From Vitrella brassicaformis CCMP3155 (Eukaryota > Protista > Chromerida): 64,000 bases of DNA. Positions 15,177 through 22,700 of this stretch are shown piece by piece. The translations under genes and the position numbers were made by a program. The DNA is taken from positions 1-64,000 of the forward strand of contig CDMY01000295.1 in assembly GCA_001179505.1 (NCBI GenBank), in the 5' to 3' direction. Below the pieces are notes generated by a model. That model did no database searches, was not told where the DNA came from, and worked only from the letters and a program-made list of their open reading frames with translations. Every line of letters starts with the position of its first letter. Position 1 is the stretch's first letter.

Positions 15177-18094
15177 CTAGGCGGGGTCACTCGAAGACAC
15201 CGACAGACTTCCCCGAGACACAACCAGCTCCGAGAGGTCCTCAGCCGGGGGTGGTGCTCCGGCCGCTCCACTCTCGCTTCGATCAGTGGGGGGAGTTGGG
15301 AAATACGAGTCGAGTGGTGATGGTGTCGATAAACGGCGGCCGCGTGCATGCACAGGAGGCGGCTGCGTGCCGTCTCCGTCTCCCTGACTATCAGCAGCAC
15401 AAGTAGCATCAACGGCCGACAGCCGCAAGTCATCGAGCCCTCTGCTATGCAATTGCGGTACAGGCGAGCAGAACGGGCTCGTGAGGGGGGTGATGCAGGA
15501 ATCGCCGCCAGTGGACAATCGGATGTCCCGCCCCTCCGGCAACGGCTCCGGCCGCTGCCCCTCGGGAGGCGGTGGAAGCGATATCTCAAGAGAGAAGGCA
15601 AGCTCGCTTGGTCGTGGGCCCGATGTCGCTTTGTCACTGCCCGAATCGTCGCTGTCCTCCTTATTGCTGGAGCTCCCTCTTCTGCTGTCTCGCAGGGGGC
15701 TCACCACCGGTGACGACGAAGGATGACCCAGTGTGGCAGACCGGTAGAAGTGGGCGGTTTTCCGCCGCTGGGCTGGTGCTGGCGTCTCCAATGCCATCTT
15801 CGATAGCGGCTCGTTCCCCTTAGTCGAGTGCCACAGCATGTCAATCACAGCAGTCAGGAGGCGGACCTGATGACCACAGACAGACACGAGCGAAGCCAAT
15901 CTAGCAGCCTCCGGGCTTCCCGGCAAGGCGTACCAGGTATGAGAGGATGTCTCTGTCCACGGCCGACCTGCCCGTGTGGTGCTCGACAGCACCTCGGGGG
16001 TGGGCGACCTGCAGGCAGCCTTTAAGAGCTGCACTCGGATCATCCGTCAGCTTGATGGGCAGCACAGACATTCCCAAGGGCACATCAAGATCGACGCCTG
16101 GGTCAAATCTGCGCACGAGACATGAGACATGGTACGAGACATTGTTGACTACGATGCCTGTCAGTGCTTCATGCGGCGACCTGTCGTCGGCATTGGCCTG
16201 GGGCACACAGATTTGGCGACCGTCGTAGAGCACCGCCCCTGCGAGGCCTCTGAACTCATCAAAAATTACCCTCTCGCCGTCAGCAAATCTGCAACAATGC
16301 CACAGATACAGCTGATCCGCCGAAAGGGTCGACGCGTCCTGGCTCACCTGAAGAAGCGATCGATGTGGAAGCGGTCGACGCAGAAAAGACGGACAGCTGG
16401 GGTTTCAACGACGTGGGGCAATGACTTCTCGAGACAAGTGCAAAGTTCCTTGAAGGTCTTCGTGCTGGACAACTTCAAGGCAAGCTCTACCGCATCTTTC
16501 ATCCTGCAGGGCAAAGCGTGGAGAGAATGGTCTGTGGGCTCAACAGCACGTGCACACACGCACACACGCGTCCAGCCATCGTGCTTACTTTTGGTTCTGA
16601 ATCGTCGTTTTTTCGATAGCCTCCACCTTCTGCACCAAAACGCCGGCGGCCAACCCGAAACACCGCAGCAATTCCTCGTCTTCGCTCGTAAAGCCCTGCT
16701 CCCCCTCATGCGCCCCGCCCCACCCCCAGCCACCGACCGTCGCTCCCGACTTCTTCTGCGTTGCCATGATGACTCCCACCACTTTTCTGCTACGTGGGTC
16801 TGTGATCGGGGCCGAGCAGAAGGGCTCGCTGGGGGCGTCGAGGTAGGAACGGATAGTGTAGTCGCTAGTCAGTGTGGCGTTGCGGATACAGCGGCTGGTG
16901 GACAAGACACATCCGATGACGTCCGCATCGGTGACTTGGTGTCGCTGCTCCTCGACCTCTCTCTTCTCGTTCCGTGTGGTCTCCACATGCGTCCACAGGT
17001 CACCCCTCCTCTCATCCAGCAGGTATATCCGGCCGTGCAGGCACTGCACCACCTGCTGAATGCTGCGGCTCCCACGAACGAGTGCGTCGCTGAGCGTGGT
17101 GGCTTGCGACATCTCGTGGACAGCCACGAGCTCGTGTTTCAGCCTTTCTTCATGAGACAACAACAAGGGACCCAGTGTCTTTGCAGCAACAACCCGCTGA
17201 GTCTGTGCCTGCCATCCCACCTGTGAGCGAGGTGCGTCATCCTCCGCAGCCTCGCGCCTTGGGCCTGCAGCGACGTGACGACACGAGCCTGCTCCGCAGC
17301 AGGGAGGCCCAGCAGGTCTTTGACGAAAGTTGTCGGGTCCTTCCATTTCTCAAAAAGATCCACGTGGTCGACCATGTCTCGCCGAATCCCACGCTCGAAA
17401 TACGAACGGATGGAGACCGCAGAGCGAGCTGACGTTGGGGCGGCCGTGTGTGCCGTGCTGTCCTGCTCGGTCGGTGGTGAGTCGGCATGTCGACGGGGTG
17501 AGGAGTTGGCCAGGTCCAGGCCGATCTGGAGCTGTCTCTTCTCTTCCCTGAGGAGCCTGTTCTCAGCTAGGGCTTGTTTCAGCAGGTCGTCACGCTTTCT
17601 TATCCCCTCCTGCAGCAGTCTGTTCTTGTCCTCTGCCTTAGCGGCCCTCCTCTGCTCAGCTCTCAGGCTACCCTGGAGCCTGCGAATGGACAGTCATAGC
17701 ATAAGGGTCATATTTGCCGTGAGGAGGTGCATGCTCGTCTCGTGCGCCACCTGGAAGCAGTAGACAGCAGCTCGTTGAGTGCAGCATCCAGATCGCACCG
17801 GTCCGGCCTTCCCGACGTGCCCCTCGGTCCTCCTTTGTTTCCGAAAGAGCCACAAGAGCCCGAATCAATCACTGCCGCGGCCGAGGACGGGCGCCGCTTC
17901 CTCCCGCTCTTGGCCAGCTGACTCGGAGGGGGCGAGTCGAGCCCGTAGTCAGCAAGGCGGCGGTACAAAGGGCCTTTCTCCCATTGGATTCTGGCGACGA
18001 CCTGTCGGAGGTTCGAGAGGGCAGCATCCAGGTCAAGGGAGACATCTGACGGAGACGGCTGCAGATGAGCTCCGTCCTCGCAGGTTGCCTTCAT
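15177..18094 (-). CDS. Coiled-coil plus tandem-GAF (PDE-regulatory type) protein with a disordered Ser/Pro tail and no catalytic domain; multi-exon
   Basis: ATG at 18094. Coiled-coil exon (RLQGSLRAEQRR...RLLREEKRQL). GAF-A: GRIYLLDERRGDLW...IGCV...PFCSAPI...VVGVIMATQKK...FTSEDEELL. GAF-B: VRLFCVD...GLAGAVLYDGRQICVPQANADDR.FDPGVD...SVLPI...GCLQV. Stop at 15177. Confidence 0.8.
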
Positions 18095-18598
18095 TGTTGC
18101 ACTTTCCTTTCGAGGAAACTACAGCTTTCAGCGGCCTCAGCGAGCGAAGCTCGAGACGATCTGGGCGATCTCGCGCATGCTCGAATCAATAAAAAGCGCC
18201 TATTGAGTCATGCACAACTTGCAGCACAAGGGTTCGTTCAGTCAGGCACATGCACAACCATGCCGCTTCCTACGTTTGTCTACTGACAGGTGTACGTGTG
18301 TCGATGTATGCATGTATGTATGCAGAGCAGTTTCCTTTTCCTTGTGTACGACAGCAAGGATGATGCCCAGCCTACAGGGCCCACACAATGCAGCACAGAT
18401 AGAGCACACACAGGGAAAGCAAGCACGGCACGCCTCTTAATTTGCGGATGCCAAAGGATGACATCACGCTGCGCATGCATGTCTCTTTCCCCTCTCCCTC
18501 CCCCCTGCCCCCCTCCCACGCAAACAAGCACAGACATACAGCCCCCATTCAGCCCCTGTCCTTTCTCTCCCAGCTCCTCCCTGCCTCTCCCCCTCGAT

Positions 18599-19497
18599 TC
18601 ATTCCCGGATCAGCTTCTTGGCTTTGGGATTGGTTCTCAGGTACTTGGATGAGTTCTTGACGAGTTTGCTGACCTCAACACCGATGTCGTTGGTCGCCCC
18701 TTGCGCCACCCGCTGTGCCGTCTGGACGACCAGATCCGAATGGTTGGCAACGTTCGGGTCGATGCCCTTGTTGGTCACGTCGCACTGTACACCCACGAAG
18801 TAGAGTTTGCGGCCCAGCCGGAGGGGTGAGATGTGGAGGAGGTTTTCGAATATCTCGCCGGTTTTCCGCTTATTGACGAGTTTGACGATGAGATCCTCGT
18901 CGCACGAGTCGTTGCGGTAGACGCGCAGGACGTAGTCCTTGATCTTCTGCGTCGTGTTGCGGTCCGTCTCGTCACACTGCAACAGACTGAATTAAAGGAA
19001 CCGGCACCAGGAGGGGCGATGAGCAGAGCTAAGAAAGCACGAGACATGGAGCACTCAAGATAGGGCCTTGCTTCCTTGCCTTCTTCCTCCCATTCCCCCT
19101 ATGTGTTGCCACACTGCGGTCATGCAGCTGTTGTGAGGCCCCCCTGCTCACCGGCAGTTGCGTCCGATCAGCTCCCATGGCTCGAACTTGGTCAGGTCGC
19201 AGAAGCCCTTTGACACTGCAACGATTGGGCAGTCAGGCAGGTCCGGGTCGGCGATTGTGGTAGAGAACTCTAAGCTTGATATACCTGAGGAACAAGCGGG
19301 GCACAGATGTCAAGGACAACACCGAGAAATGGACACAGCTTCTCGAGCTCTGCAGCACCAAGCGCAGTCACTGACAGGCAGGCCATACCTTTGAGCATCT
19401 TGATATCAACCTCTTCTGACGCCGTTTCGAGCTTGGCATCCGAGTCTCGCAGGCACCCACAGAGGCATCGAAAGCAGCCAGACTCCTTCGTTGGCAT
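18599..19497 (-). CDS. Short LOV-domain flavin blue-light photoreceptor, 209 aa; exons 19497-19389, 19284-19152 and 18986-18599
   Basis: The exons total 630 nt and splice in frame. Product: MPTKESGCFRCLCGCL...FSTTIADPDLPDCPIVAVSKGFCDLTKFEPWELIGRNCRLLQCDETD...LVNKRKTGEIFENLLHISP...YFVGVQCDV. It keeps the NCR photoactive Cys and the N, N, Q flavin-contact positions. Confidence 0.93.
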
Positions 19498-19776
19498 GAT
19501 GATCGTGTCACGCAGTGGAAAGGGGTGGTGGTAAGACACGGCAAGATGCAATTGGCAAGACAAAGAACGAAACGGGGAGATGGAGGAAGGAGAAAGAGCA
19601 AGCACGGCGCTTCTTTGGGTCCTGGGGCCTAGAGAGAAGCTCGCAGTTCTCGGCCTTTGGTCACAATGACAACAGAAAGACGTTTTCGGCCTCGATGCAT
19701 CTTCGTTCCCTCTCACAGTCGCCTAGAGACTGGTTTTGACGATGACTGTCACATTTGCTGATCTTGCTGCGCCGTG

Positions 19777-22700
19777 ATGGTGATGCTGCCATCTGTCCTC
19801 TTTTTGGCCGTCTTATCGTCGGTGGCGGCGGCGTCGCCCCTGCAGCGGATCCTCCAGGCCGCCAATGAGACGGATCCATCCCCTGATCTCCCTCCAGGCT
19901 GGCGTGACCCAAAGAGGCTGAAGCTCCTCCAGCTCTCTCTCGTCTTCCGCCCGGCCGATGTGGTGACCGATGCAGTCGAGCAAGGCGACAACATCCTCCC
20001 CTACACCGAGATGGAAGAGCTCGTGAGCTGCGATTCGTGCCAAGAGGATGCGGCCGCATTGTTTGAGTGGTCTCACGAGGCCGGGTTGGCGCCCAACGAG
20101 ACAAGATCCATCTTCGAGGACAATCTTTGCGTCGTCCCCTTCATCACCTGCGTGCGGCTGAGCGAGGCGCTGGCGGACGGCGGCCCGCGAGAGGGCTACC
20201 TTATCGTTCTGACGGGGTTTCCCGGCGACAGAGAGATATCGGATGTGCCGGGGATCTTGCAGCAGCGACGGGGGAGGCCTCTCGTCTTTTCGGATGCTTT
20301 CTATCGGCTGCGGCACGTGATGTGCCTCTGGTCCTACCAGGTGCCCATGCAGGGGACGCTGTCCGATGAGCTTTCCAAAGTGACCTCTTTACGCGCCCTC
20401 TTCCTGTTGGGAGCGGTGAGCTGCATATCATACGCACATCCGCTCACTCATCCACCCACATGTTTGTGTCTGTGCTGTCTGTCATGCCAGGGCCCCTTGG
20501 CAGGGCCGCTTCCCAGCACCATCGGCGAGCTGCCTTATCTCAAGGGCCTGTACATTCAGCAGGAGATGGTTGCCATCAACGGCCCCATCCCACCCTCCAT
20601 CACCAGTCTACCGCGCCTCGAGGCCCTCACACTAACATCGACGAGCTTCTCAGGGTCCATCCCTGAAGACATCGGCAATCTCAGGAGGCTGCGCGCCCTG
20701 GAGATATGGGACAACAAGAAGATGAACGGAACCTTCCCCGCCAGTGTGACGTCTTGCCGCAACCTCACCCGACTGAAGCTCGATGGCACCGGCCTCTCGG
20801 GCCGTCTGCCCGGCGACCTGGGCACCCTCTCCCGCTTGGACGAGCTGACGCTGGCGAATAACGGGCTGAGTGGGGAGCTGCCCCGGTCGCTGGTGCAGCT
20901 GAGGCGGCTGCGGGTGCTGCTTCTGACCAACAATGGGTTCAATGGGTCGCTGCCGGACGGGCTGGGGACCAAGATGGACAGCCTGCGACAGCTGGATGTG
21001 TCGTTCAACGAGGTAGGCAGAGCACAACCAGCATGAGCGCGCAGATGCGTATTTGAGAATGCCTCTGTATGTCAACAACTGCCTGTTTCTCTCTCTGTCA
21101 CCAGTTTTCCGGTCCAGTGCCGGCTTCCTTGGGCAATGCGGCCAACCTGACGTTTCTGAGTCTGGAGAGGCAGGAGCCGGGCTTCAGCGGCCCGATGCCA
21201 CCGGAGCTGGGGCAGCTCAGCAAGCTGCAGCAACTCTCAATCGCTTACAACAAGGTACACACACACACACACACACACACGTATGACGCACTCTCCCTGT
21301 CCACAATTGTTGTTTGTGTGTGCAGCTTTCCGGTACGCTGCCGGACACGTTGAGTGGCTGGAGATCGGTCGAGTATCTCGACTTGCGCAACAACAACTTC
21401 TCCGGCACTCTGGAGCCGCTGAGCAACCTCACGTCGCTCGAGGCGCTGAGGGTGTCCAACAACTCGGTGAGCAAGAAAGGCACACAAAGGGGAAGGGCAT
21501 TTGGCAAATGCTTGTGTCTGTGCTGTTGGTGGCTGCGTGTCAGTTTGGTGGCCATCTGCCCTTCGGCTTTGAGAGCTTTGAGAACCTCACCAGATTCGAT
21601 GGATCCAACAACAGGTGCGTGCGGAGCGCACAACACGCGCCGACATACTGTGGATGGATGGATGGATGGATGGATGGATGGGGTGTCAGGCTGGTGGGTT
21701 TGGTGGGCCGTGATCACAGTGGTCCGGCCTACGAGAGCATCCGTCGGCTGGACGTCCACTCCAACCTTTTCGAGTTATCGCCCGACCTGTCCGTCTTCCC
21801 CAACCTCGAGTACGCCGATCTCCACAGCAACCTTATAACGGGATTCTCGGGCAATGGATCCATCCCACGATCGTAAGCCACCAGGCCAATGAACAGACAG
21901 ACAGACATGAGGGATGGATGGATGGATGGTGTTTGTGTGTCTTGATAAACAGGTTGCGTTACCTGGACTTGCGCGACAACCGGCTGACGGCGCTGCCGGA
22001 GGGCTTTCGGTCGATGCCCAGCCTGGAGACGCTCTACGTCGCCAACAATCGCATCAACCGGACAGGCTGGCCCATTTGGGGCCGCACCCCCGATGGATTC
22101 TGCCAATTGGGGCAACTCAGTGAGCTCCTGACACACACACATACACACGCGCGCACGCGCACACATACACACACAGACACACACAGAGAGAGAGAGAGAG
22201 GCAGAGGCGGGCAGGTCGTGATGCATGGTCATGTGTGTGATTCTAACAGACTCGAACGTGATGCGGCAGCTGCTGGATCCGCGTGTCGCCCCGCCCGACT
22301 GGGGCAGCTTGACCGACCTGGACGTCTCGAACAACCCCATCAATGTCGACGTCACCGACTTCCTAATGCCGCTCAAGTGGCAGAGAAAGTATGTTGCTTG
22401 CACGCAATCTTCCCTGGCATGTGGCCGTTCCCTCCAAATGAAATCGACCTTCTGCCTCTATGTGTTCTTGTCAGCTTGATGGTGCTCACTGCGGCGAATT
22501 GCAGCCTCTACGGCGCGATGCGTTGCGAGGCCTTCGTCGCGTTGAACCCCCAGGAAGTGCAGCGCTTCGATATCGGCACGCTTGACCAGGAGACATCGGT
22601 AACACCCCCGCCCCCCTCCTCCCACTCCTGCCCAACACACGCAGATGTCACGGCAAGGCGCTCTCCTGTCTGTGTGGGTTTGTTCCTTCATGCAGTTGTC

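Follow-up and report, generated by a model that had tools for sequence, protein, structure and literature searches.

The 64,000-nucleotide stretch analyzed here (the window) comes from contig CDMY01000295.1 of Vitrella brassicaformis CCMP3155 and carries, on its minus strand, a real and well-transcribed LOV gene. Its three exons, with GT..AG borders throughout, join into 630 nt that encode 209 amino acids followed by a TGA stop (Table 1). The translation begins with MPTKESGCFRCLCGCL and ends with KYLRTNPKAKKLIRE; the four N-terminal cysteines and the basic tail that the original prediction had described are present in this genomic 209-aa sequence. Within the GRNCR/LLQC motif, the coding sequence is interrupted by intron 2, a phase-2 intron. 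The gene had been called invisible, which holds for a plain list of open reading frames but not for the databases: the exon-3 translation retrieved a 100% identical V. brassicaformis CCMP3155 protein of 176 aa, “PAS domain-containing protein” (hereafter P0001), so that the gene is already in GenBank and UniProt, though uncharacterized. The public annotation has both introns as in the 209-aa model and starts the protein at Met34. Chromerids are photosynthetic relatives of apicomplexan parasites, and their LOV photoreceptors are uncharacterized; a literature search turned up no paper describing them.

Table 1. Features of the LOV locus and its downstream neighbor (positions in the window).
Feature	Position	Strand	Remark
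5′ UTR, minimum extent	19498..19611	-	RNA contig ends at 19604-19611 in X1, X7, and X8
Exon 1, coding part	19389..19497	-	Met1 at 19497; annotated start Met34, ATG at 19398
Cys cluster (C8, C11, C13, C15)	19476-19453	-	In exon 1
Intron 1	19285..19388	-	104 nt, GT..AG, phase 1; joint in X1, X2, X7, and X8 contigs
Exon 2	19152..19284	-	LOV A-beta to start of E-alpha; ends with GRNC plus CG of Arg; Pfam PAS_9 on this piece
Photoactive Cys80 codon	19156-19154	-	In exon 2
Intron 2 as removed in RNA contigs	19029..19151	-	123 nt, GT..TAG; joint 19028/19152
Retained 42-nt stretch	18987..19028	-	In observed mRNA; intronic in the 209-aa and annotated models; TAA at 18994-18992
Exon 3, productive model	18599..18986	-	LLQC to end of LOV core, then helix, tail, and stop
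J-alpha-like helix (predicted)	18742-18683	-	In exon 3
Basic tail	18646-18602	-	In exon 3
TGA stop	18601-18599	-	In exon 3
3′ UTR, approximate	18190..18598	-	X7 continuous from 19028 to 18195; X1 piece 18485-18186
Downstream neighbor, separate 828-aa gene	15177..18094	-	Weak GAF match; no splice to LOV ORF

Transcripts and neighbors of the LOV gene

Contigs identical to the LOV locus were present in four runs (X1, X2, X7, and X8), and since they are spliced, they represent RNA; X1, X7, and X8 are runs from three studies. Intron 1 was confirmed in all four. No ATG occurs between 19611 and 19497, so that Met1, which has an A at −3 and precedes the Cys cluster, is the transcript's first AUG. The Cys-rich extension is therefore probably translated, provided that the mRNA is translated at all. 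At the other end of the gene, the contigs were colinear with the genome across the TGA without splicing, and they extended to 18195 in X7 and to 18186 in a separate X1 piece.

These transcript ends bear on whether the LOV ORF belongs, as the leading part, to a longer LOV-GAF gene or a two-gene transcript that also includes the downstream 828-aa gene, whose GAF match is weak (1.2e-3). The two lie on the same strand, 504 nt apart, and the spacer between them is covered when the runs are combined (X7 down to 18195, X8 up to 18513). However, no joint connects the two genes, the TGA is crossed unspliced, the coverage in X1 and X7 ends near 18190 with none over 16940-18103 (the first ~1.2 kb of the downstream coding sequence), and the annotation has two genes, which makes a joint gene or transcript highly improbable. 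The expectation that the LOV domain stands alone, without splicing into downstream exons and without an effector domain, was thus borne out, PAS_9 being the only Pfam match.

The downstream gene has a transcript of its own, an X8 contig covering 16909-18513 without differences, which was seen in X8 only. Over 18195-18513, the LOV 3′ UTR overlaps the 5′ UTR of this gene on the same strand; that is, the UTRs of two transcription units overlap while their ORFs are not fused. The promoter of the downstream gene would then sit within the LOV transcription unit, or else there would be read-through. On the middle exons of this gene (15932-16938), contigs from X1 and X8 carry 5-14 differences each, and the only X1 pieces downstream of the uncovered stretch have 5-7 each. 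One base is missing at 16380, 16938 forms a loose end, and these contigs apparently derive from an expressed paralog at another genomic site. A divergent neighbor on the plus strand, at 19774-21036 and beyond, encodes an LRR protein (LRR_14, 1e-17) with a signal-peptide-like start, annotated at 2553 aa with Ephrin_rec_like matches. RNA confirmed its intron at 20415-20489, and some contigs with 15 differences over 20490-20800 again suggest an expressed paralog.

The LOV domain and its Vitrella relatives

The sole domain found in P0001 was Pfam PAS_9, at 38.8 bits against a cut-off of 27; when the exons were searched separately, exon 2 gave 1.3e-3, below the cut-off, and exon 3 gave no match. 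P0001 aligned with the LOV2 domain of oat phototropin (AsLOV2) at 36% identity (4e-22) over residues 7-145, an alignment that reaches into Jα, while aureochrome LOVs matched less well (7e-18). An AF2 model based on a 50-sequence alignment reached a pLDDT of 82.7, with ~96 in the core, compared to 35 from the single sequence. This model represents the 176-aa P0001 starting at Met34 and hence is without the first 33 residues of the 209-aa form. In it, a helix at residues 130-149 (pLDDT 66-77) is placed like Jα, and the helices at the end stay under 55; for the basic tail, a helix is predicted at low confidence. Foldseek matched the model to AsLOV2 structures with a TM of 0.84-0.86 over ~147 columns (2v0u, 4wf0, and 5dju) and to LOV structures overall with a TM of 0.84-0.90.

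The photoactive cysteine proved intact, as predicted: the adduct cysteine is Cys80 of the 209-aa form (C47 in P0001), located in the motif GRNCRLLQ. Across 50 aligned LOVs, N46, C47, R48, N86, and N96 (P0001 numbering) are invariant, and Q115 is nearly so. The polar flavin contacts of AsLOV2, which we take to be N449, R451, Q454, R467, N482, N492, and Q513, with C450 as the adduct cysteine, are identical here in six of seven cases; R467 is replaced by Lys, which keeps the charge, and C450 is also identical. In the paralogs described below, the R467 position varies between A, K, H, and R. The protein is a genuine LOV domain with its adduct cysteine, and it is predicted to bind flavin. With no match to bZIP and 36 residues preceding the LOV domain, it is not an aureochrome, and with a single LOV and no Pkinase match, it does not have the LOV1-LOV2-Ser/Thr kinase architecture of phototropins.

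A full HMMER search yielded 8358 matches, whereas the word-indexed protein search gave one non-self relative only. Nearest among the single-LOV proteins are four paralogs from Vitrella itself (CEM35433, CEM03295, CEM11163, and CEM37188), whose identity to the LOV gene is 43-47% when the full aligned LOV regions are compared and up to 53% within matched stretches, and which likewise match Pfam PAS_9 only. They have in common with the LOV gene the motifs NCR[F/L][L/M]QC, PDCP, and DVTxxxVDP as well as an insertion after Fα. The sequence NCRLLQC, originally presented as an oddity of this gene, turned out to be a family trait, because the paralogs carry NCR[F/L][L/M]QC and one of them, P0021, has the identical NCRLLQC.

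In an IQ-TREE phylogeny, the five Vitrella LOVs formed one group (96/87), with a sister group (100/99) of ~15 proteins of 320-700 aa that have an N-terminal LOV, one cluster of which includes a protein of the dinoflagellate Polarella glacialis. The branch of the LOV gene (0.56) is no longer than those of the paralogs (0.29-0.84). The Vitrella clade holds at least five single-LOV paralogs, and the LOV gene is lineage-specific. In its paralogs, the N-terminal region is long and contains heptad-like stretches, and the C-terminus of three of them is ELCI or QLFI, whereas the LOV gene alone combines a 36-residue N-terminus containing four cysteines with a long basic tail; the intron positions differ as well.

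Several of the proteins collected in this search are of interest in their own right. In P0021, P0011, and P0009 (L002, L004, and L006), the conserved ends (...SELCI or ...AQLFI) follow the post-LOV helix and contain no CaaX box. For another Vitrella LOV gene, P0151 (L005, 3001-4248), the annotated and transcript-derived N-termini disagree: the MMETSP ORF (P0050) begins 40 residues downstream of the annotated start. The top HMMER scores belonged to metagenomic giants (P0003, 4197 aa; P0004, 3055 aa; and P0005, 1611 aa) with 6-10 LOV-like stretches each. In the sister group, P0106, P0140, P0145, and their relatives carry a single LOV at the N-terminus, and their long C-terminal region gives only a weak He_PIG (Ig-like) match, which is an uncharacterized LOV architecture.

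Acceptor choice at intron 2

The original prediction held that three exons splice to 209 aa and proposed to confirm this by cDNA. On the genome, this model stands, with its GT..AG borders, its open frame, and its annotated introns, and the RNA contigs agree with it at intron 1. At intron 2, however, the contigs use a different acceptor: in X1, X7, and X8, the intron ends at 19029 rather than at 18987, such that 19152 is joined to 19028 and not to 18986, with 129 nt on the shorter side of the joint. The retained nucleotides read SAHRPSWCRFL after GRNCR and then run into an in-frame TAA, whereby the mRNA from the proximal acceptor contains a 92-aa ORF with its stop in the middle of the sensor. 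The LOV-intact junction (19152/18986) was in none of the listed contigs of the four runs, which retain the commoner path and give no ratios, so that the productive junction could exist at some level. The X2 contig breaks off precisely where exon 2 does (19152), as would be expected of an unresolved fork. A 21-nt mini-intron within the 42-nt stretch was rejected, since contigs and genome are colinear over these bases.

We scored both acceptors with a matrix built from 23 Vitrella introns, for which the training scores ranged from 4 to 20.6 and 20 of the 23 acceptors read CAG. The distal acceptor (18987, tcag/T), which is intact and comes with a pyrimidine tract of its own, scored 9.8, within the training range, whereas the proximal acceptor that is in use (19029, ttag/C) scored −0.85, under all 23 training sites. 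The higher score explains why the earlier reader and the gene predictor both picked the distal site, and the normal appearance of this site makes it likely that some productive splicing occurs. Furthermore, exon 3 has an open frame of 128 codons with a GC3 of 0.77 and all key conserved residues, which argues that the full protein is under selection, now or recently. Conservation of the intron position was considered as further support for the distal acceptor and rejected, because the paralog introns differ: they lie 2 nt away (P0151) or five codons upstream (P0021), or are absent.

Word-indexed protein searches returned neither a 209-aa nor an MMETSP-derived form of the LOV protein, while MMETSP ORFs exist for two paralogs. 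This lack of a transcriptome-derived form could reflect a 92-aa ORF that falls under the usual ORF-calling cut-offs, or alternatively low expression. A 32-mer from exon 2 and a 31-mer from exon 3 had no match in JGI metagenome contigs, a blank that carries little weight.

We consider it probable that the locus is an expressed paralog of the short-LOV type, that most of its mRNA results from unproductive splicing, and that the full-length sensor is a minor isoform or one made under certain conditions. Its coding capacity would be that of a LOV2-like blue-light sensor, composed of an N-cap, a LOV core with Cys80, a Jα-like helix, and a basic helical tail. The steady-state mRNA would be spliced mainly at the upstream 3′ splice site (19029), which keeps the in-frame TAA, and the main predicted product, a 92-aa fragment, would be unable to adopt the LOV fold. 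Only splicing at the distal acceptor (18987) would yield the intact 209-aa protein, either at a low level or under particular conditions. If made, it would most likely act like other short LOVs, where blue light would induce an FMN-Cys adduct and a flanking helix (or helices) would be freed, leading to changed self-association or partner binding; the basic tail might, together with the CxxCxCxC cluster, keep the protein on a membrane. Output mechanism, acylation, and the very existence of a productive isoform are all points that we infer.

The same junctions could also be read as the mark of a decaying paralog, in which a newly effective upstream AG captured splicing and the full-length product was lost, with the open exon 3 reflecting how recently this happened. 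Consistent with such a loss, only the stop-containing junction was assembled in X1, X7, and X8, four or more further LOV paralogs are available to take over the function, and the word searches found no protein of this gene from transcriptome sources. Yet the 209 codons have no frameshift, stop, or loss of conserved residues, the branch is about as long as those of the paralogs, the distal acceptor and its pyrimidine tract are preserved, and the gene is still well transcribed, and we regard decay as rather unlikely. Quite improbable, in our estimation, is a regulated switch between the two acceptors 42 nt apart, by which other conditions (e.g., darkness or a life-cycle stage) would shift splicing to the distal site and yield an effector-less blue-light sensor of 209 aa, anchored to a membrane through S-acylation of its SNAP25-like CxxCxCxC cluster, its abundance being set by alternative splicing.

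Whatever the fate of the full-length form, the locus calls for caution with gene models: the model predicted from the sequence equals the public annotation, yet the transcript that dominates the assembled RNA is a different one. Gene models built around a conserved motif can mask unproductive splicing.

The Cys-rich N-terminus and comparison with known LOV systems

The cysteine cluster CFRCLCGC occupies residues 8-15 of the 209-aa form with the spacing C-x2-C-x-C-x-C. This spacing is identical to that of the S-acylated 85-CGLCVCPC-92 of SNAP25, as given in PMC7247313, where small or hydrophobic residues likewise lie between the cysteines. The SNAP25 cluster, however, is internal and needs a downstream zDHHC17-binding motif, whereas the cluster of the LOV gene sits near the N-terminus and includes an Arg. 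In alveolates, N-terminal acylation is a common targeting device, including for pellicle proteins (PMC2936552 and PMC7327484). S-acylation of CFRCLCGC, and with it membrane tethering, is a plausible hypothesis on the strength of the sequence. Other readings of the termini (signal or transit peptide, NLS, and metal binding) were weighed on sequence grounds as well, and none was supported.

Taken one step further, the cluster would make the locus encode a stand-alone LOV photoreceptor of 209 aa that is produced constitutively, sits on a membrane through its S-acylated N-terminal cysteines, and acts there as a light switch. This account has in its favor an intact LOV core, the higher sequence score of the distal acceptor, and the position of Met1, with no AUG upstream of it in the transcript; the SNAP25-like spacing and the acylated pellicle proteins of alveolates also fit such an anchor. 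Against this, the productive junction was in no contig of the four runs and the stop-containing form was in three of them. Moreover, the 209-aa N-terminus has no Gly2 for myristoylation, 0 of the 156 fetched relatives have a CxxCxCxC or comparable N-terminal Cys cluster, the first 33 codons have a lower GC3 (0.64) than the rest (0.77), the annotators begin the protein at Met34, past the cluster, and the literature search found no paper that ties a short LOV to palmitoylation. A constitutively tethered photoreceptor is thus an unlikely account of this locus. Among the closest known systems are the following.

AsLOV2 (Avena sativa, PDB 2v0u/2v1a) is the best solved match, where alignment and model cover A′α, the core, and the Jα-like helix, and where GRNCR and the Q, N, and N positions are conserved. 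In contrast to AsLOV2, the LOV gene has the replacements F452 to L, G455 to C, N425 to C, and R467 to K, an insertion of seven residues after Fα (nine in the paralogs), and ~30 extra residues that make up the basic tail. Compared to phototropin, it has neither the kinase nor LOV1.

Short LOVs such as Neurospora VVD, Pseudomonas PpSB1-LOV, and Rhodobacter RsLOV are presumed to produce their output via helix rearrangement and association. The LOV gene resembles them in having a single LOV core and no effector, with predicted flanking helices only, and DsLOV (Dinoroseobacter, 4kuo) was among the Foldseek fold matches. By sequence, however, it is not close to the known short LOVs, with the Vitrella paralogs being nearest and the group that includes the dinoflagellate protein following next. 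It further differs from them in its Cys-rich N-terminus and in that its dominant assembled mRNA encodes only part of the domain.

BcLOV4 is a fungal RGS-LOV protein that shows light-driven membrane binding via a polybasic helix; it contains RGS and DUF domains, and its lipid binding is electrostatic and reversible. Both BcLOV4 and the product of the LOV gene have a basic segment beside the LOV domain, and membrane association is the output of BcLOV4. In the product of the LOV gene, by contrast, the tether would be covalent and constitutive. If true, this covalent attachment of a short LOV to a membrane would be unusual among natural designs, and the protein would offer optogenetics a compact scaffold.
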